Source: Adineta vaga (taxonomy: Eukaryota; Animalia; Rotifera). Taken from it: DNA of 64,000 bases. The translations under genes and the position numbers were made by a program. The notes under the pieces are model-generated. The model was not told the origin of the DNA. It was given only the letters and a program-made list of their open reading frames with translations, and made no database searches. Of this stretch, positions 23,795 through 37,096 are shown piece after piece; positions within the stretch are counted from its first letter, which is position 1, and each line of letters begins with the position of its first letter. Where the stretch lies: assembly GCA_021613535.1 (NCBI GenBank), contig CP075496.1:10850001-10914000 (forward strand), in the 5' to 3' direction.

Positions 23795-26052
23795 ATGAAG
23801 GACTCACATGTCGATGAAATATCTCCATTAATGTTCCATAGTTCTCGTGTCCCACTGAAAACAGATAATCGAACTAAGTTTCAGAAGAGATTCTCTGTTT
23901 TATTCATTCTATTAGCTGTTGGTTTGGAACGATTAGTATTTTATTCTTTATCTGGCAATTTAATACTCTTTCTAACATCAGATCATATTCGTTGGTCATC
24001 ACTTCACAGTATTACAGCATCATTTATCTTCTTTGGTAAAATACTTTTCAATTTCTATATTATATTCTATATCTTTTCAATAAAGGAACAAGTTATGCAT
24101 CAACATTATTTTTCTCGTGGATAAGTGATGCAAAACTTGGTCGTGCAAGAACAATTGTTGTTGGTAAAAGAAATATCTTATTTCATCATAGACCATTACT
24201 GACATGATTGTTCTATAGGTTTTGTATTATATATTGTTGGTTATGTATTTTTCCCGTTATTTTCACATGGAGAAGTATATAAAAGTTTATGCGGAGGATC
24301 ACCTATTCATATTGATGAATCTGCACCATATTTCCATGAAAAATGTAGTATTCAAATAACATTAGTACTTTTTATTACGTAAGTTATTCTTTTGATGAGT
24401 TCTCATTCATTCAATAGACATTATTTGTTTGTATTTGTAGAGCTATTGGTGTAGGAGCAGTTGAAGCTAATATGGCTGTATTAGGTGCTGAACAAATTCG
24501 AGATCAAAAAGCAACGACAAAATATTTTGCAAGATATTATCTTGCTGTGAATATTGGCTCATTTCTTGCCTACGTATTTATCGCATATGTACAACAGAAT
24601 AGATCGTATCATTTAGGTTATTTTATTCCAACTGGATTACTTGCCTTTACATTGATCATATTTCTTGCGGGTTATAAATGTTACATACCTATCAAACCGC
24701 ACGATTCTGTTATGAGTTATTTTTTTCCCGTTTTAATTAATGCATTTCGTAGCTGGCGAACACGTCCACAACTTACACGTAATAAAGTTTGGAAACATCG
24801 ATTTTCACATAAGGCCGTACGAGCTAGTGATCAAATGGATGATAGTGAAAATTTGACATTTAATAATAATGAACGATCAAAATCATTTTTAGATTATGCT
24901 AAAGTAGAATATAATGGTCGATTTCAAGGTCGTATTGTTGATGATATAAAATCACTTCGTCGTATCATTGTGATGTTCATACTTCTAATACCTTATTGGC
25001 TATTATACATTCAGGTAAAGTCTTTATTTTTGAAAGAATTTTCGAAAATTACTTAAATATAGTTGTATTCACACTGATTCATTGATATTTGTTTTAGAGT
25101 GATACAACCTTTATTGTACAAGGTCTACACATGAGAATACCAAAATTTCAATCGGATGCACGACGAATGCCTATCGCTTGGTTATCTCTTAGTGATCAAG
25201 TAGTAATTATTTGTACGTATAGAAATCGTACAGTATATCGATATAGTTTGTTTTGGTGTTTAGCGTAGAATCCGATTAATAGTTATAGAATGTATTGAAA
25301 ATAACGTTTTATTTATTTATTTATTCTAGTTACTATATTCATTTTCAATACATGTATATATAATAAACTCCATGTCAAAAATCGATTACTTTCAATAAAA
25401 GTACGTTTTGTTATTGGAATGATTGCTGCTACGATTTCGATGTGTATAACGGGTACAGTTGAAATCTTTCGTCAACAAAAATGCAATTCACCTTTTTCAC
25501 AAACGATCGGTACATTTCAATTGTAATTATTTGATTTTTACTTATAATATATTATTTCTCATAGGCAATACTGTTTACAATGCATCTGATATGTCCGTAT
25601 TTTATCAATTACCACAATATGTTAGTATGGGTCTATCGGAAGTTTTTGGTTCGATTGCTAGTTTAGAATTTGCTTATTTAACTGCACCACAATCTGCTCA
25701 ATCACTCGTAATGAGCCTTCGATTTTGTTCTGTTGGTCTTTCATCTTTTTTGGCCTCGGGATATATTAATATATATGAAAGATTCAATGCTAATTTTTCT
25801 GTGACAAACTCTGAGGTAAGTAACTAGAACATATGTCTTTTTCTTGTTATAATTTTTGAAAATTCTTAGTGTAAAGATGCAGAAAAACCTGAATTACTCT
25901 ATATTTATTATTTTGTTCTGGCTGGTATTCAATTTCTCTTTATATTTATTTTTCTTGCATGTGATCGAAAATTTCGTATAGTTAAAGCTTCCGAATATCG
26001 ATACAACACACGTCTATTTATTGGACCAGATGCTGGTACATCCACTACATGA
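23795..26052 (+). CDS. SLC15A4: POT/PTR family peptide/histidine transporter (SLC15A4-like)
   Basis: Multi-exon. LAVGLERLVFYSL, WISDAKLGRARTI, LGAEQI, YYLAVNIGS, YQLPQYVSMGLSEVFGSIASLEFAYLTAPQSAQSLVM. Confidence 0.9.
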
Positions 26053-26394: not shown

Positions 26395-27153
26395 ATGACA
26401 ACACTGACAACTAAATTTCAAGATATAACAAAACAGTTACAACAATTAACAATCTGGAGACCAAATGAACGTAATCCACTTCTTGAACTTGATCGATGGC
26501 GTACTGATGCTCATCAAATAATTGAACAATTGTATAATAGAAAACGACACGAAATTGAACTACTTTCAGAAAAACATGAACGAGAGTTTCTACGACAATT
26601 AGCACGACAACGTTTACAATTGAATAATGTTCAGAAAAAGTTAACAACAAAATCAGCATGTAATGCACATCTTCGTGCATTTAATGATAATACAATATTT
26701 AATGAATTACAAACAATTGAACGTGATATTAATACGCATTTAGGTCGAGCGGAAATAGTTATCGAAACAAATCCTCTGAATTGTGATGGTTTAGTCACAC
26801 TTGGTCTTAAAACATATCTTTCATCGGCACCGCTCATGTATTCCAAAGAGGTTTCATACAAAGACTCACCGAAAAAACCCATGCGTCGGCCAGCAAGTGA
26901 AGTTCAACATGCCTATGATAAATGGCTTTTCAGTAAAAATGAGGAAGAAACTGCTCAAAGAGAGTTATGTAGTGCTCGACAAAAAGAATCCAATGTTCAA
27001 GAGAAACAGTCAACTCGACGTGAGCAAAATACTGCAGCTTTTAAAAGATGGGAAGATGCAAAACGAGAACAAGGTGCATTTAAGAAGAAAAAAGTAACTA
27101 TACATAATAATGATGATAATAATAATACTGAGCAAGAAGATCATGGAACATAG
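26395..27153 (+). CDS. Hypothetical coiled-coil protein, intronless
   Basis: 252-aa ORF; helical N-half (LDRWRTDAHQIIEQLYNRKRHEI); C-terminal AYDKWLFSK and AFKRWEDAK helices. Confidence 0.7.
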   Translation: MTTLTTKFQDITKQLQQLTIWRPNERNPLLELDRWRTDAHQIIEQLYNRKRHEIELLSEKHEREFLRQLARQRLQLNNVQKKLTTKSACNAHLRAFNDNTIFNELQTIERDINTHLGRAEIVIETNPLNCDGLVTLGLKTYLSSAPLMYSKEVSYKDSPKKPMRRPASEVQHAYDKWLFSKNEEETAQRELCSARQKESNVQEKQSTRREQNTAAFKRWEDAKREQGAFKKKKVTIHNNDDNNNTEQEDHGT

Positions 27154-28116: not shown

Positions 28117-30724
28117 CGTTTCACTTGGTTTCTGTTATTCGATATTTGTTAGATAGTAGTGGTAGCAATCGATAACAATCGACTAATTAATCAGATATGA
28201 CGTATTTGAGTAGGTTGAATCTAAATGTTGCCCTGAAACAATTGAGTCGGTTGGAAAAATAATCGACGAAAAAAATATTCAGATTAAAATAATTTTTTCG
28301 AAAATGATTCTTTATATTTATGCGACGAACAGCGAAAAACAATGTGACGACTATTGTGTACGCACTTTACGAACAGCTAAATTGAGAACAAGAACATGCT
28401 CTGTAATATTCTACTTTACGCAAAATGATGCACTGTCATACCTGAAGTACGCGCACTTCGAATGACACATGAAGCGTAAAATATTTCTAAATAACATTCT
28501 CTATCAATATATACACTCATTAATTTGATAAACAAATGCGGATTTCTACTCTATAGAAGTTCTTTTACAAAAAAAAGTATATATAAATATAATTGAACGT
28601 TTTAATAAAAACATCTTACTGACGTATGGATTCGAGTGCTCAAGTTACTTATAATTCTATAGTCTTATTCTTCACAATCTTAAGAAATAAAATACTGCAA
28701 ACGTCTTATTCTCTTATATCAAGAATGATTATACAATAGAAAAAAAGCTCAAACAATAGAAAGAAAAATAAACAACTAATGTTATTTTAAGGTGTAATAT
28801 GAGTTTGATTTATTGTCATGAAAATTGGATTTATAAACTATTCATAATTATAATAAGATAATGTATCGCAAAGTACTACATTTCTCTTATGGAATCAAAC
28901 AAAAACATATACTAGGAAATTATCTCTCTTTCCAGATTTGAGTTTGCATCGATCAATGACATGACCATATACGATAATTTTTGATTTTTACCGCTAGTAT
29001 TTTTAGAATATTAATAAATTATTGACATATGAAATGCTCTGTTCTATTCTCATTAATTTATAAATGTCTATTTTGTTGCATTGAATGCGAAGAAACATTA
29101 CGAAAGGTATTGGGGAATATAGTTTAGTCATTATTACATGAAATTACATAACGTCAGAATAAAAAGAATAAATTTGTAGTCATTCTATTGACACTGTTTG
29201 CAATATTATCTCAGACATTTTTCTTCTGCCAAATATTTAACAGACTATGAACAGATGTTAGTGTAAATATAAATATAAATCTATATCTTCTCGTGAATGC
29301 TTTCTGATAAGATGGATCGTAAGAAGAAAAAAGAATTGATGCTATTTCATTCATTTTAACCATAACGTTACAATAGACTATAGCATCTATTAATGCTGTT
29401 CTCTCCAATTTACTTCTAAATGAACAGCAATGACTTCTCCAAATCTAGCAATAGAAGTGTTGGCTTAAAAGCCACATAGCTTTCTTCGCATAGTGTGCCA
29501 TCAGCTACAGTCATATTTCTTAAACTTGCAAGACTATTAAAAACATTACGACACAGAAGATAAACTTTTCTGTATTTACTTAACAATAGTCGTTTTGTTG
29601 ATATGAATTAATAAGAGTTATAAAGAACGATGAAGAACAGTTCATACGGTTCGCATCGTATGTCGTCATTAAATTTCAGTACTATTACTAGCAAGAATCG
29701 ACAATAGATATGTTTATTAAAACCTATTGCGCTCTCTAATTATCTTAAGAGTAATCATACTGCTGAAATACTATACTCAACACCTGTATAGTTGGAGATG
29801 GTTAATAGTGGTATTTCGCCACGATTTACAATCTTGTTACTAAAATAGAACCATCTCCAAAAATGAAGCAAAACACTATTGTCTACAATTTGTCGATGAC
29901 TTTTATATAATATCGAATTGATTAGAATGAAAATTAGATTTTGTCTCTCGTCAGTAGCAGTGATATTATAATATAATATCGCTTAATAAAATCTATTGAC
30001 ATATTTTCATTTATAAACTTGTACTTTTATTGTTGAGATTATTTGAATATAATGTTATATATATATATCTCAATAGTTATGAGAATATGTTTTTGAAATA
30101 CTCACACGTTTGGAAACGTAACAGATTCTAAAGTAGAAAAATACATAATTTTAGCCTTTTCTACTTCAAAATCGAATCTATAGATGTTCTTATGCAAGTA
30201 AACTATCATTACTCAACTCTAAAGATTCTGTTCTCTTGAACTAAACATTCGAACGAGCACGGCATCTATCTTTACATATTGTGCATGTGTGTGTCTCCAC
30301 ACCTCACAAAGTATAACTCAATGAAAAAGAAAATGACAAGTCGCTCTACGATTCGCTTTACTATTTATCAAATAAAAATTGAAAACGACTTTGCTAAAAA
30401 AAACGAACCACAAGGTCTATTACTACAATGTGTACGAATACGATTAATTCTCATTATTGAACCTTTGTTCAGAGAATTCTAAATTTACATATAGATCATG
30501 CCCATTACAGTTTAAGTAAGATAAGACACACATATATATATATAAATGTTTCAAACATTTTTTTGTCTAGAGATAGATAATACAATCAATGTTTATGATA
30601 GACAGCTTTATTTTAAACAAAAATTAAGGTAAGCCATCGATCTAGATATTAAAACATTATGTTTTTATTCAGAAATAGAAGTAAATAGAAAAGGGCTAGA
30701 ATTTCATACGAAAATAGTTTTCTA

Positions 30725-33700
30725 TCAAATATGAACGAAGTGTTCTGATGAATTATAAGGATCAGAAACGTCTTTCAGATTGGAAGAAGTTGTTGATGGA
30801 TATCGACGGTTGTAGTTCATTGAAGGATGGAACTGATCAGATTGCGAATGAAATGATCTAGATGGTTCTGGATATTCGTTCGATCGATATCCTTTCTTGT
30901 CGACTACCATAGAATCAAGTGCTGCATAGGGAACTTCTGCAACAACAAGACGTCCTGATGATAAATATTCAGCCTTTTCTATGGTAATTATTGAATCGGC
31001 AGATAAATTCAAACAACGAAGAGCTTTTTGAATATCACGTAATTCAGATGCTGAAACCATTGTCGAAGAAATACTTATTGATCGATCATTAGTTGATGGA
31101 AATGTTGGAGGACTTCTATAGTTCATCGATTGTAATGATACGGTATCATTTCGTACTGGCGAAGATGTTCTGTAAGTTTCATGAACTGGTGGTACAATAT
31201 TCGATGTGAATGATGATGTTGGTAACTTTCGTTCAGTTGATGGAGAAGCAGAGAAATTGACCGTGCGTTTATAGGAAATAGGTGAAGATATTGTTGGAGA
31301 ATGATAATGAGCGCTTCCTTGACCATCTATAACGTATGGTAGAACATTATCATCTTCGTCAATTGCACTATTAGTTTTTATTCGATCAGAGTTGTAAGAC
31401 GATGAAAGTGTTGGTAAGTAATCTGTGGTTTGCGATTTGGTTTCAGCTACTATTGATGATGTTGGATGTGGCGAAGTTGGTGGTGTATCAGAAGGATAGA
31501 TGCGTTTATAAAATGATGGAATTGGTGGAACTGCATGATCAGGAGGTGAATCGTTGTCAATTATCCATACATCTTCTCGAATGACATCTGGTTTACTTTT
31601 ACGTGCTACATTTTCATTTGTACTAATAGAAATTTGCGATGGTACATTTTGTTGTTGAGATGCATTTGATCTTGTGGAATTATGATCTGACCAGTACGGA
31701 TTCTTCCACGGTTCATTTTCTTGTTTAGGTAAAATTACGTTCTGTGATTTATTATCTTTCCAATAAGGATTCTCCCATGGTTTATCATCTTGTTTAGAAG
31801 ATGTTGTAGTTTTCGATGTACTATTATTCCAGTAAGGATTTTGCCATGGATTGTCCTGTTGTTTTGAAAGTGTAGACATTGTACTTTCTGCATTCTTTTG
31901 TACTGAATTATTCTTTAACTCATCTGTTGGTTGATCAGCAGTTGGTATTGAAGACTTATTATCTTTCCAATATGGATTATCCCATGGTTTATCTTGTTGT
32001 TTAGGTTGCACTTGAGACTGAGTGTTGTTATCTTTCCAATAAGGATTAGTCCAAGGTGTATCTTGTTGTTTCGATAGTGTTCCTCTTGTAGTTGCGTTGT
32101 CATTGACATCTACATTTTTCTGTGATTTTGTTGATTGATTATCATCAATAATAACTTTATATCTATCATCTTTCCAATAAGGAAGTTTTGGTGCGTCATC
32201 TTGTTTCGGAGTAAATGTCGGTATAAAAGGTTTGTTCTCTTCTTGTAAAGTTCGAACATTAGAATCTGTGCTCTGTGGAATCTGATCTTTCCAGTATGGA
32301 TTCTGCCATGATTTTTCTTCGTTTTTGGTAGTTGTTTGCGTTTCAGGAATGACATCATTGAGTTTTAAATTCTTCTCTAACTTGTCTTGCTGCTGAATAG
32401 AAGCTAATGGTTGAGACGTTTGTTGTTTCCAATATGGATTCGCCCAAGCTATCTCTTCTTTTCTAGTAGATGATGGTATGTCGGATTTCTGTTCTATTGA
32501 ACTGAGATTTCCTTTTAATTTATCCTGATCTGCAATAATCGATGGTGTCTGAGGAATATGATCCTTCCAATACGGATTTTCCCATGGTTTCTCTATCTCT
32601 TTGGTAGATTTGACACTTGTATTGGTCTGATCTTTCCAGTATGGATTCATCCATGGTTCATCGTATTTTTTAGTAGATGTTGATTGATTAGATGTGCTGT
32701 CTTTTGAAATAATTTTCTCTTCTGGTTTTTCTTGTTGTTCAAGAGAGACTGAAGTTTGAGTTGTAACATGCTTTTGGTAAGAACTTTCCGTTGGTTTATC
32801 TTCTTGTTTCTTCGAAGTTGAAATCTCGGATGATTGGTTCTTCCAATATGGATTCTCCCATGGTTTCTCTGCTTCTTTTAACGCTGCTGAATTACTAGTT
32901 GTATCATCTTTCCAATATGGATTTTTCCATATCTCTTTTTGTTCCTTAGATGGCGTCGATATTCGGGCGAAGCTGTTTTTGTATCATTTTGATTTGTTGA
33001 TTGATTACTTGGTTGCTTAGATGACTCTGTTTTGGTCTTTTGATCTTTCCAATAAGGATTTGCCCATGATTCATCTGGCTGCTTATTGAATGTTGGTATA
33101 TCGCTTGTATCCTTTTTCAAAGTCGAATCTGTTTTTAATTTCTCTTCGGTTTTGATAGATGTTGCAGTTAGTGGTGTTTGATCTCTCCAGTAAGGATTTG
33201 ACCATAATTTTTCTTCTGTTTTGGTATTTGAAGATACTGAAGATTTATTATCTTTCGCATTCGATATATCCTTTACTTTATGTTCTTCATTTGTTAGTGC
33301 CGAAATCAAAGGCGTTTGTTTCGTCCAGTAAGGATTCTCCCACGGAGTCTCTTCTTCCTTCGTAGATATCGATAATTCAGACTTCTCATGTTCTAACTTT
33401 GGATCACTTTTTGATTTATCTGGTTCGCTAACAGCTGTTGCAATTGAAGATGATTTATTTTTCCAATACGGGTTTTCCCATGGATTCTCTTCTTTCTTTG
33501 CGATTGCAGACTCCTTTTCTAATTCATCAGATTTCAATGCCGACGGTTTTTGTTCTTTCCAGTACGGATTTTCCCATGATTTTTCCTCTTTCTTTGACTC
33601 TGTTGATATCTCGGATTTAATATTATTCGACTTCATTTTGTCCGTAGATGCATCCATTTGTTTATCAGATTTTACATTTAGAGGTGAACTGTCTTTCAAA

Positions 33701-36007
33701 TAAGGATTTATCCATGGTTCAACTACCTTGTTTGTAGTTGAAGACTCCTTTTCTTTTTCATCTGATTTTACGGTCGACAGTTTTTGTTCTTTCCAATACG
33801 GGTTATCCCATGGTTTCTCTTCTTTCTTAGGTTTTTCATCTTTTAAATTTATATCACCTGTTAATATATTTGGTTGACTAACAGATCGTAAAACCATGGA
33901 CGGTTTATCTTTCCAATAAGGATTTTCCCATGTAGCCTCTTCTTTTGTCGTGGATTTCATTATTTCAGGTTTTTTGTCTTTTAAAGGCAGATCATCTATC
34001 GATTTATCAGGTTGACTAACAGATGATTCTGGAATCGTGAATAATTTATCTTTCCAGTAGGGATTTTCCCATGGTTTAACGTCCTTTGAATTTGATTTAT
34101 CTTTTGATTGATCATGATGTGTCGTTATCGTAAAAACCGGTGCTGATTTGTCTTTCCAGTAAGGATTTTCCCATGGTTCACTTTCCTTCTTCGCGCTTGC
34201 CAACTCCTTGTTTTGTTCATCTGATTTCGAGGCTATCGATTTTTGTTCTTTCCAGTAAGGATTCTGCCATGGCTCTTCTTCCTTTTGACTTATTGCCGAT
34301 GTTTCAAGTTTATCTTCTTGTGAAATCGATTTATCTTCTAAATCATCATTCGGTTTAATTAACGATAAACTTAGTCGTTTTTTTTCTTTCCAGTACGGAT
34401 TCTCCCACGGTGCTTCGTCGTCTTTCGGGTGGGTAGACGTGGATATTTCAGATCTATTCTTTTCTAAATTGAGATTGTTCTTGGATTCATCTGATTGCTT
34501 AGCGGATATTGATTCTGAAGACATTCGATCTTTCCAGTATGGATTCTCCCATAGCTTCTTTTCTTCTGTAAGAGATATTGACTTTTTAAACTTATGATCA
34601 TCCCAATAAGGATTCTTCCAAGGTTGTTCTTCATTTTTCGTGGATTCTAATGTATCTTCTTTGATGTCTTTCGGTTTCAGATCATCTGTTGATTCATTCT
34701 GTTGTTTATGAAGTTCTTCACGTATAAGCTTCTGAGTTTTCCAATATGGATTTTCCCAAGGTACATCTTCTACTTTAGTATTTAACGGATTTGATAATGT
34801 ATCATCTTTTTGATGAACGTTCTTCTGTGATTCATCCTTCATTTCAAACACTGTTGTAAATACTGGTGACTTTTCAAACGTTTCAGCGTTTAGAGAAGAT
34901 TCTTTTTCTAGCGGTCGAGTAGAATCGATCAAAAGATTAGATTCTGTATGAGCTAAAAGAGAAGAGAGATGTTCACTTCTTATTAAAGGCTCCTTCTGTT
35001 TATCATAAGAAGGATTAAAAGAAGCAGTACTTATTCTCTTCTCTACAGTGATTTCGTTATTCTCTGGATTTGATCTTGACCAATACGGGTTGACCCATGA
35101 TTTGCTAGTATCCACATTGACTTTGTCTGCCGAAAGAAGTGGTTGATTGAGCGAAGATACTATCTTAATATCATCATCACTCTCTTCGTCAGATGAATTT
35201 GTTCGTCTCGAACGACGAATATTTGAAGAATGTCTATGTAATTTTGGTGTCGCATCGTCATTTTGTGACTGATCATTTTTCGGTGCAAGGAAATCATCGT
35301 GACCATCACTCCGATCTGATATACATTTTGTACCGGTATGAAATGAATCGATAGATGTAATTGAAATATCACTTGAGCCGCTCTTTTCACGTCTGGTAGT
35401 TATAATTTTGTTTTGATCATCACTTGTAACAGATTCAACCATGACTGACGATATATGTATGTCAGATGGCAAACTACAAAAACAAATTTTATTTGATTAT
35501 AGTTCAAATCAATTCTAAATAATTGGGATATTACTACCGTTGAGGATCTTCATTCTCGATCTTTTTTATTTGTGTTATTGTTGTTCCTGGCTGCCAATTA
35601 ACACCCCAATACGGGTTAATCCATTCGTTTCTTTCTGTTTGTTGTTTTCGTTCAATTTCAACAGTAAGATCACTTTTAGTTGTTTTCTTGTTTCTCGCCT
35701 CTGTACTGACATCACTGTTTAAATATATGTCATTAATTGCTCTAATTAAAGTGTCATCATTATCATCTTCGGAGTCGTCGTCGTCGCTGTTATCATCATC
35801 ATCATTTTGAGGTACAATCTTTTTCCTCACATTATCTTTTTTCGCTGCACTTGTTGGATCCTGTTGTTGTTGTTCTATATCACTTTTCACATCATACCAA
35901 CTATCAGTTGCTGTTGTTCTTGATGTAGCATCTGACGTTACCGATGATGTGGTATCATCATCAGAACTTTCATCTTCTGTTGAACTCTGATTTTGTCGAC
36001 TAAACAT
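30725..36007 (-). CDS. Large (~1740 aa) low-complexity protein with ~28 WxNPYWK[DE] repeats; 1-nt frameshift near 32962
   Basis: ORFs 36007-35534, 35472-32878 and 32650-30725 share the motif. Phase-2 intron ~35537-35474 joins the first two; restoring one base near 32962 joins the last two through an open 32960-32650 segment containing two more motifs. Confidence 0.85.
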
Positions 36008-37096
36008 TCGATATATGACAATCGTCTAGTAATATCTTATCTAACAAAATGAATAAAAAAAACAAGTCTTAATACGTAAAGCTACCGATGAGAAATGAAG
36101 GTTACATATAATAATACCAATAAATAAATGTCTATGTAAAAGTATCTGTGTTTATCAATGACGAAAAAGAGTATTTCGTTTTTTTTTCAATATATGCCCA
36201 TGAGAAAGAAAAAACAAAAGCAATTCAAGCATAACTACCCAGTGAGAAATGATATCAGAAAAATGTTATTTATAGGATCAGTGAATCATAATTGTATATA
36301 GTCATGTTTCTTTTCTTTCTTTTTTTTTCTTTACTATTTCACCCAATGTATCGATTTATTTTGTCATCATTGAGGTATCAAAGAATGTATCGATAGAGAA
36401 AACAATGTTATTCTAATTTGTATAATCAAGGATAATTGTCTTTGAAAGACGAGTGAGATTATGTTGATGTATGTGTATGTTGTTTCTCTCCTTTTTTTTA
36501 CGGCAATCATGTTTGTATATCTTTTCGTTCTCTCTTCCTTTTTATACAAGTTCATAAAATAGTGAAGCGCTTGCAAATGGATTAAAAGACTTGTTCGTTC
36601 AACTAACCAACTCTCAAGCGAGGATAGCTGTTATGAAATAACTTTATTTCGTAGTGAGTTGTCATATGAGAAGTTGAGGAGTATGTATGATGTAACAGAC
36701 ATGAAAGAGAAAGAAAGAAAGAAGAAGAAAAAAAGACTTTTTTTCAAACATATCACGTAATCGTAAGTCTCAGTCAATTGACAATATTTCTTTTTTTTAC
36801 GTCCTTTTTGTGATGTGTCTCTGTCTGTATATGTAAATTATAACTATCGTCAACGTTTACTTATGTTCCTAATGAAAAAAATTGTTCGAGTAAGTTCAAA
36901 TCTATCAATTAATGACAATAATACTGATCATTGTTGTACATGTCAATAGTAGAATGTTTTTCCTCCTCTTTTAACCTCATTGATTGTGTACAATACGCGA
37001 GTGAGTGAGTAGAAAAAGTTGTGACTGAAGTAAAGAGGACAGGTCAACTTCATTTATTATTCTTTCATTCTACATCTGAGATATACGACAACATAG

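Follow-up and report, generated by a model that had tools for sequence, protein, structure and literature searches.

What does a very long, apparently unfolded protein do with 28 copies of one short tryptophan-rich motif, WxNPYW? The question is raised by a gene on the minus strand (30725..36007) of a 64,000-nucleotide stretch of the Adineta vaga genome (GenBank assembly GCA_021613535.1, contig CP075496.1, positions 10,850,001 to 10,914,000), here called the window. An earlier note, made from the sequence alone, proposed an unrecognised multivalent scaffold or condensate protein, possibly relevant to desiccation if the host were a bdelloid rotifer. The host is indeed a bdelloid, and the gene is transcribed, spliced, and conserved in its motif across genera. 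Together with the lack of a match to any characterized repeat family, these results go the note's way on all three grounds that it gave for refutation. The motif is new, and the family that the gene represents, confined to bdelloids, was previously undescribed, although disordered multivalent motif arrays are an already known kind of protein. Its product is probably, though by no means securely, a bdelloid-specific intracellular disordered protein that serves as a multivalent scaffold of linear motifs.

The WxNPYW Array

Translation of the gene yields exactly 28 copies of W.NPY[WL], in agreement with the earlier count of about 28. These comprise 27 W.NPYW and one WINPYL, and the number of such matches expected by chance is ~0.0003 given the protein's own amino-acid composition. 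One copy lies in the first open reading frame (ORF), 16 lie in one frame, and 11 lie in another. The motif accounts for 55 of the 59 tryptophans in the protein, and every one of the 28 NPY tripeptides stands in motif context. Twenty-six copies form the main array (31691..34758, minus strand), defined by translation, spacing, and consensus, where the motif is embedded in the extended pattern K-[KQ]-[EQ]-[ED]-K-P-W-x-N-P-Y-W-K-D-x-K. Two degenerate copies that had been reported, KLPYWKD (32168-32188) and PTESSYQK (32771-32794), are both present in the translated minus strand. The chain as a whole is rich in Lys, Glu, Gln, Ser, and Thr and contains only 0.7% Gly and 0.1% Cys.

The motif is encoded by synonymously varying codons, as previously claimed: Asn by AAT or AAC, Pro by CCA, CCT, CCG, or CCC, and Tyr by TAT or TAC. 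Tandem Repeats Finder detects no DNA-level periodicity in the A. vaga array.

Within A. vaga, the motif is private to this gene family. A DNA pattern for W.NPYW, scanned across the 100.8 Mb assembly of six contigs, matches 29 sites, comprising 27 in this gene and two in a short paralogue (C1:3395817 and C1:3396273), whereas the reversed-pattern control matches none. The shorter NPYW-coding 12-mers occur at 67 sites outside the family versus 30 for the reversed-pattern control. Of these 67 sites, 60 were read in frame (21 of them locally open), and none of the 60 carries the family flanks. Three of the open sites (L035, L045, and L056) share the context YRV[KR]PS.LKEK[VI]NPYWAQRFISTRNF, which suggests that they belong to a small, apparently unrelated conserved gene family.

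Homologues and Motif Conservation

With the last 748 residues as query, an exhaustive phmmer search across 1.84 billion representative proteins returned 25 proteins. A profile search of a 5.8-billion protein collection gave 17 matches, and a Rotaria orthologue used as query against the same collection gave seven. The queries in these homology searches were exon pieces or database orthologues rather than the joined spliced protein. All named homologues come from bdelloids, namely Rotaria sp. Silwood1, Rotaria sp. Silwood2, R. socialis, R. sordida, R. magnacalcarata, Adineta steineri, A. ricciae, and A. vaga. The others lie on metagenome contigs, and every protein annotation reads "unnamed" or "uncharacterized." Among the sequences searched, the family is restricted to bdelloids.

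The motif is retained in 13-28 copies while the spacers diverge, with counts of 28, 27, 27, 21, and 13 in the long-form orthologues. Across 137 orthologue copies, the first position is Trp in 93% (otherwise Phe), the last is Trp in 98%, and Asn, Pro, and Tyr are near-invariant. Information content reaches ~4.3 bits at W, N, P, Y, and W versus ~1-2 bits in the spacers. The charged frame in the same copies, K-[KQ]-[EQ]-[ED]-K-P before the motif and K-D-x-K after it, is moderately conserved. Between A. vaga and A. ricciae (P0064, 1,598 residues), 129 of 135 motif residues are identical, compared with 35% in the array spacers and 47-56% in the rest of the protein; this contrast is somewhat inflated because the aligner favors motifs. 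The coding sequence contains 39 listed allelic or strain differences, 25 non-synonymous and 14 synonymous. Only one of them falls in a motif (N-to-D at 33060, giving WADPYW) where ~4 would be expected, a paucity that is suggestive but not significant. Taken together, the alignments fit selection acting on the motif rather than on the spacers.

The Rotaria socialis orthologue (P0008, 1468 residues) consists of homogenized 46-residue units that read F.NPYW rather than W.NPYW. It also contains the decayed copies FENPSW, FDNPKW, FESPYW, and FDKPYW. R. socialis is not known to survive desiccation, and the F.NPYW units and decayed copies might mark relaxed constraint in such a species.

Predicted Disorder and Conserved Terminal Blocks

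Measured against the charge-hydropathy boundary, every piece of the protein plots as disordered; charged residues make up a fraction of 0.25-0.37, and the spacers are 76-78% polar or charged. AlphaFold2, given an 11-row alignment, models the first 663 residues of the array with no secondary structure and a mean predicted local distance difference test score (pLDDT) of 42. The highest Kyte-Doolittle mean over 19 residues is 1.03, so that the protein has no membrane span or signal peptide, and the N-terminus is acidic. Both observations bear out the corresponding statements of the earlier note.

The 327-residue tail is also modeled with low confidence (pLDDT 47, 20-row alignment), but it contains three short islands that coincide with conserved blocks on the minus strand. 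The first, VWIIDNDSPPDHAVPPIPSFYKRIYPSDTPP (31478..31570), is supported by alignments in which P, F, Y, R, and P are nearly invariant in the family, and its island PPIPSFYKRIYP reaches a pLDDT of ~80. The second, VLPYVIDGQGSAHYH (31301..31345), is a conserved block with a predicted β-hairpin, and the hairpin island LPYVIDGQGSAHYH scores ~70. The third, SELRDIQKALRCLNLSADSIITIEKAE (30968..31048), has the family consensus ELxDIQxALRLLExNPNAIPTIE and is predicted to form a single helix, ELRDIQKALRCLNL, at tail residues 220-235 with a pLDDT of ~78. A possibly folded C-terminal segment had been suggested; the model gives one isolated helix and not a domain. The C-terminal end is conserved as well (30728..30742, minus strand, ending FVHI-COOH), as seen in the alignment and in comparison with the short paralogue. 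Its last three residues follow a hydrophobic-x-hydrophobic pattern, VHI or VLI, and the short paralogue ends in VVLI.

At the other end, a conserved acidic, Ser/Thr-rich N-terminal stretch ends in SWYDVKSD.EQ and resembles an LC3-interacting motif. The core SWYDV is of the [WFY]-x-x-[LIV] type, and its W, D, and V are invariant in seven aligned N-termini. However, A. ricciae has SWHEA and the short paralogue has SWSAT at this position, and an N-terminal Atg8/LC3-interacting motif is therefore given little weight.

Gene Structure and Transcription

Open reading frames, reading frames, and RNA contigs together define a single gene of ~1,710 spliced codons, with an ATG at 36007 and a TGA stop at 30725-30727. 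It has three exons on the minus strand, at 36007-35538, 35473-35031, and 34952-30725. Exon 1, placed by reading frame and conserved blocks, encodes the acidic Ser/Thr-rich N-terminus. Two conserved blocks lie in it, DSWYDVKSDIEQ (35870-35905) and LIRAINDIY (35723-35752), as does the first motif, EWINPYWGVNW (35594-35626). Exon 2 carries the block DDFLAPKN (35275-35298) and the second motif, SWVNPYWS (35077-35100), while exon 3 encodes the main array and the C-terminal tail; both are placed by RNA contigs and reading frame.

Evidence for splicing comes from Logan contigs of four public runs aligned to 30600-36200, with RNA-derived contigs covering ~30600-36017. Intron 1 (35474..35537) is 64 nucleotides long with GT..AG ends, and contigs of runs X1 and X5 contain the joint 35473->35538. 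Intron 2 (34953..35030), 78 nucleotides long and reading GTACTG...TTTTAG, is removed at the joint 34952->35031 in the same two runs. Neither joint occurs in run X9, whose contig is unbroken across 34674-35664. X9 is thus unspliced while X1 and X5, from different studies, carry both joints, which indicates that X9 is DNA and X1 and X5 are RNA, and that the gene is transcribed and spliced. Parts of the gene are also covered by contigs of a third run, presumed to be RNA, from a third study. Intron 2 is in frame and stop-free, and a plain ORF scan therefore reads straight through it. This read-through, in ORF scans and prokaryote-style gene callers alike, adds 26 spurious residues.

The main array is interrupted in the reference by an apparent frameshift. 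The haploid reference lacks one base at 32960..32961 relative to the read-derived contigs, which have an extra G behind 32960. The extra base is present in all three runs that cover the site (two RNA and one DNA, X1, X5, and X9, from three studies). By phase arithmetic, the missing base produces the apparent frameshift between the second and third ORFs, and restoring it yields a continuous frame; the two sides of the site are stop-free for 663 and 744 codons. The site lies outside any homopolymer. The gap reflects either a fault in the assembly or a haplotype that genuinely carries the frameshift, two cases that the contigs cannot tell apart. A 53-nucleotide GT..AG candidate intron (~32975-33027) that would also repair the frame was rejected, given unspliced RNA contigs (X1, 32418-33166) and the extra base at 32960. 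The three ORFs accordingly form one gene, as the earlier note held, by way of the introns and the restored base, but its length is ~1,710 rather than ~1740 residues.

Spacing and Turnover of the Array

Motif spacing in A. vaga is dominated by one unit length and its double. A length of precisely 23 or 46 residues is shared by 16 of the 25 spacings, and another spans 69; the remaining values are 32-34, 40, 47, 48, and 85 residues. The spacers had been described as divergent and mostly 20-50 residues in length. The divergence stands, at 35% identity to A. ricciae, but their lengths are not free. In orthologues, spacings of 23-24 and 45-46 residues dominate, with a 32-residue unit in one lineage and a 55-residue unit in another, and the Silwood1 orthologue consists of ~20 near-identical 23-residue units. 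Arrays of metagenome orthologues from other bdelloid lineages (L008:4691-6148 and L009:3087-3992) are tandem repeats at the DNA level, with periods of 207 and 96 nucleotides and ~75-81% matches. This suggests that arrays grow and renew by tandem duplication of units, independently in each lineage, and that the A. vaga array is old and diverged.

The spacing was also considered as a strict functional ruler. This idea was rejected because spacer lengths in the central array of A. ricciae differ from those of A. vaga, and the 23/46 lattice is instead read as history.

Comparison with Known Families and Motifs

No Pfam family, LEA and other named desiccation proteins included, matches any of the gene pieces, the orthologue of A. 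ricciae, or the short paralogue. A profile search of the PDB finds no match, and the ESM Atlas offers no usable neighbor. A full-text literature search for NPYW or NPYWK and for bdelloid disordered tryptophan-rich proteins returned nothing relevant, and NPYWK appears in no paper. As the earlier note anticipated, no characterized repeat family in these four sources matches. Its further statement that the motif exactly fits none of the ligand classes that it listed holds for the NPF, PWxxW, and [LM]xW[DE] expressions, all absent here, but not for the WxxxF/Y expression of PEX5, which is satisfied.

Endocytic motif arrays provide one of the closest parallels. Eps15, with ~15 DPF copies, and epsin, with DPW and NPF, likewise carry many 3-6-residue [ND]-P-aromatic copies along a long disordered region and act through avidity. 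The ligands themselves differ. None of the four coding pieces contains the NPF bound by EH domains, as all 28 copies read NPY, and none contains the DP[FW] of AP-2 α-appendage ligands, although one variant allele gives DPY at 33060. WxNPYW is longer than DPF, DPW, or NPF and has two tryptophans. Unlike the endocytic accessory proteins, the protein has no ENTH, EH, UIM, or other Pfam domain. Tested by regular expression, the motif lacks NPxY as well.

PEX5 motifs of the form WxxxF/Y bind the PEX14 N-terminal domain as short helices. The W-x-N-P-Y core fits this expression in 28 of 28 copies, all within the motif itself, and the surrounding region is disordered as in PEX5. However, PEX5 has ~7-8 copies rather than 28, and its C-terminal TPR/PTS1-binding domain is not found here by Pfam or PDB profile, the tail being predicted as disordered. 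As for an amphipathic helix, AlphaFold2 predicts none in the array, in a model of the unbound chain, and Pro occupies motif position 4. The central Pro and the lack of a predicted helix would argue against the helical PEX5 binding mode.

Other Trp-based motifs (δ-COP, GW182, and clathrin W-box ligands) resemble WxNPYW in using Trp as the key residue within an acidic or charged disordered context. The clathrin W-box PWxxW has no matches, with a Trp-Trp gap of four residues here versus two. The kinesin light chain W-acidic pattern [LM]-x-W-[DE] also has none, and the residue after the motif Trp is Glu in only 43% of copies and Val in 26% of orthologue copies. The GW/WG dipeptides of GW182 and the Ago hook are represented by one WG, in exon 1. 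A passage in PMC6737914 that cites Suckling et al. gives the ligands of the δ-COP μ-homology domain as WxxF or Wx(1-6)[WF]. The latter accommodates W-x4-W in 27 copies, but the expression is loose and the match is by regular expression alone. Known δ-COP ligands are present once or a few times per protein and accompany other domains, unlike a 28-copy array.

FG nucleoporins form the second close parallel. FxFG nucleoporins such as Nsp1 share regular aromatic motifs preceded by K-P, disorder rich in Lys, Glu, Asp, Ser, and Thr, units of ~20 residues, and lineage-specific turnover. However, the A. vaga protein has no FG dipeptides and only sparse Gly, and FG nucleoporins occur in all eukaryotes, whereas this family is confined to bdelloids and lacks their coiled-coil anchor domain. 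By analogy, the protein would work most like endocytic motif arrays or charged-spacer FxFG nucleoporins, without being a member of either.

Proposed Mechanism and Alternatives

The favored reading, a multivalent scaffold, places ~28 copies of the WxNPYW core in the conserved charged frame K.[EQ][ED]KP-WxNPYW-KD.K along a charged chain that would not fold. In each copy, Asn-Pro may make a tight turn and so display the three aromatic side chains as a group. The copies would then act by avidity, making many weak, identical, simultaneous contacts, most likely with a dedicated folded partner, while the conserved short motifs at the N- and C-termini may anchor the chain to further components. Tandem duplication of 23-, 32-, and 46-residue units would renew copy number and spacing in each lineage as selection holds the motif constant. 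The predicted disorder and the apparent selection on motifs over spacers both fit the scaffold proposed in the earlier note. Nothing observed here supports its suggestions of condensate formation or of relevance to desiccation, and a long-form orthologue also exists in R. socialis, which is not known to tolerate drying.

A dedicated folded partner is preferred because invariant Asn-Pro within a conserved charged frame has the look of a recognized ligand; such a frame would be more typical of a recognized ligand than of a generic sticker. The less likely counterpart is self-association between motifs, which is kept in play by the restriction of the motif to one family. In its fullest form, this alternative is a homotypic sticker-and-spacer system in which WxNPYW clusters stick to one another by aromatic contacts and form a condensate or gel, possibly on water loss, with no folded partner. 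It is an unlikely explanation but the strongest of the rivals. The aromatic clusters are spread evenly along a disordered, charged chain, a motif private to its family reveals no wider network of ligands, the change from Trp to Phe at position 1 is tolerated throughout the R. socialis array, and the host is an anhydrobiotic bdelloid. However, the invariant Asn-Pro and the charged frame would be unusual for generic stickers, and the long form persists in R. socialis, a species not known to survive drying.

The protein may instead contribute to an intracellular structural or elastic matrix, either as part of the intracytoplasmic lamina of the syncytial integument or as a spring-like linker whose repeats have mechanical or cross-linking roles. 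Its great length, repetitiveness, Lys/Glu/Gln/Ser/Thr-rich composition, and lack of a signal peptide suit such a role, as do the differences in copy number between species and a lineage-specific distribution, which is common for such structural proteins. A Cys content of 0.1% makes disulfide hardening unlikely, and the conserved terminal short motifs resemble docking sites rather than matrix sequence. This explanation is considered improbable.

A folded repeat protein, either a solenoid or a stack of β-hairpins built from 23-residue units, could draw on the dominant 23/46-residue spacing in A. vaga and its orthologues and on the near-identical Silwood1 units, but it is very improbable in view of the featureless AlphaFold2 model obtained with an alignment, the polar or charged spacers, the absence of PDB and Pfam matches, and the interspersed units of 32, 34, 40, 47, and 48 residues that differ between congeners. 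A decaying gene, in which the reference frameshift at 32960/32961 would mark a pseudogene with neutral repeats and to which the high 25:14 ratio of non-synonymous to synonymous differences might point, is just as improbable given the frame-keeping base in every RNA and DNA contig over the site, the long stop-free flanks, the spliced transcript, and a motif conserved across two genera and metagenome bdelloids.

Several points weigh against the scaffold reading itself. Low AlphaFold2 confidence is no proof of disorder, and the frameshift in the reference haplotype may be genuine. No strict spacing rule is maintained between A. vaga and A. ricciae, although some avidity models need one. If the motif were a ligand for a domain of general use in trafficking or transport, further proteins should carry it, whereas it is private to one family, and this exclusivity suits a dedicated partner, self-association, and a structural role equally. 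A more specific proposal is that WxNPYW is an undescribed proline-turn linear motif of the Trp/Tyr/Trp type that evolved either with a dedicated receptor or as the sticker of an FG-like gel and that organizes a bdelloid structure or compartment. This proposal is possible but doubtful.

The Short Ohnologue and Genomic Neighborhood

The short paralogue is I4U23_001007, annotated as a hypothetical protein of 551 residues and encoded by two exons at C1:3395491-3397227 (L024:1491-3227). It was missed by the search of the genome with the exon 3 protein and was found only through the DNA motif pattern. It contains two WINPYW motifs and one decayed copy, FWQQSHW, and shares N- and C-terminal blocks with the long gene. 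Both loci lie tail-to-tail with PTR2/POT transporter genes, and two metagenome contigs that bear homologues have a PTR2/POT neighborhood as well. From this shared context and sequence, the two A. vaga loci are read as ohnologues, one array-rich and one array-poor.

In the window, 23795-25827 and 26395-27153 on the plus strand hold parts of a PTR2/POT transporter gene (Pfam PF00854, E = 3e-29) and a 252-residue gene to which Pfam gives no match. Both are arranged tail-to-tail with the repeat gene. The order of repeat gene, ~250-residue gene, and PTR2 is kept on metagenome contig L008. At the other locus, a CLN5-like gene and a tandem pair of PTR2/POT transporter genes border the short ohnologue.

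Significance

Lineage-specific disordered proteins underlie several unusual animal traits, and bdelloids serve as a model of asexual reproduction and of tolerance to desiccation and radiation. The gene described here offers a clean, testable case: a near-invariant private motif in 13-28 copies, with no predicted fold, that is expressed and kept across genera. Its short ohnologue, with two copies, provides a natural low-valency comparison. Knowing the binding target of the motif would enlarge the catalogue of linear motifs by one and could also reveal how repeat turnover adjusts valency.

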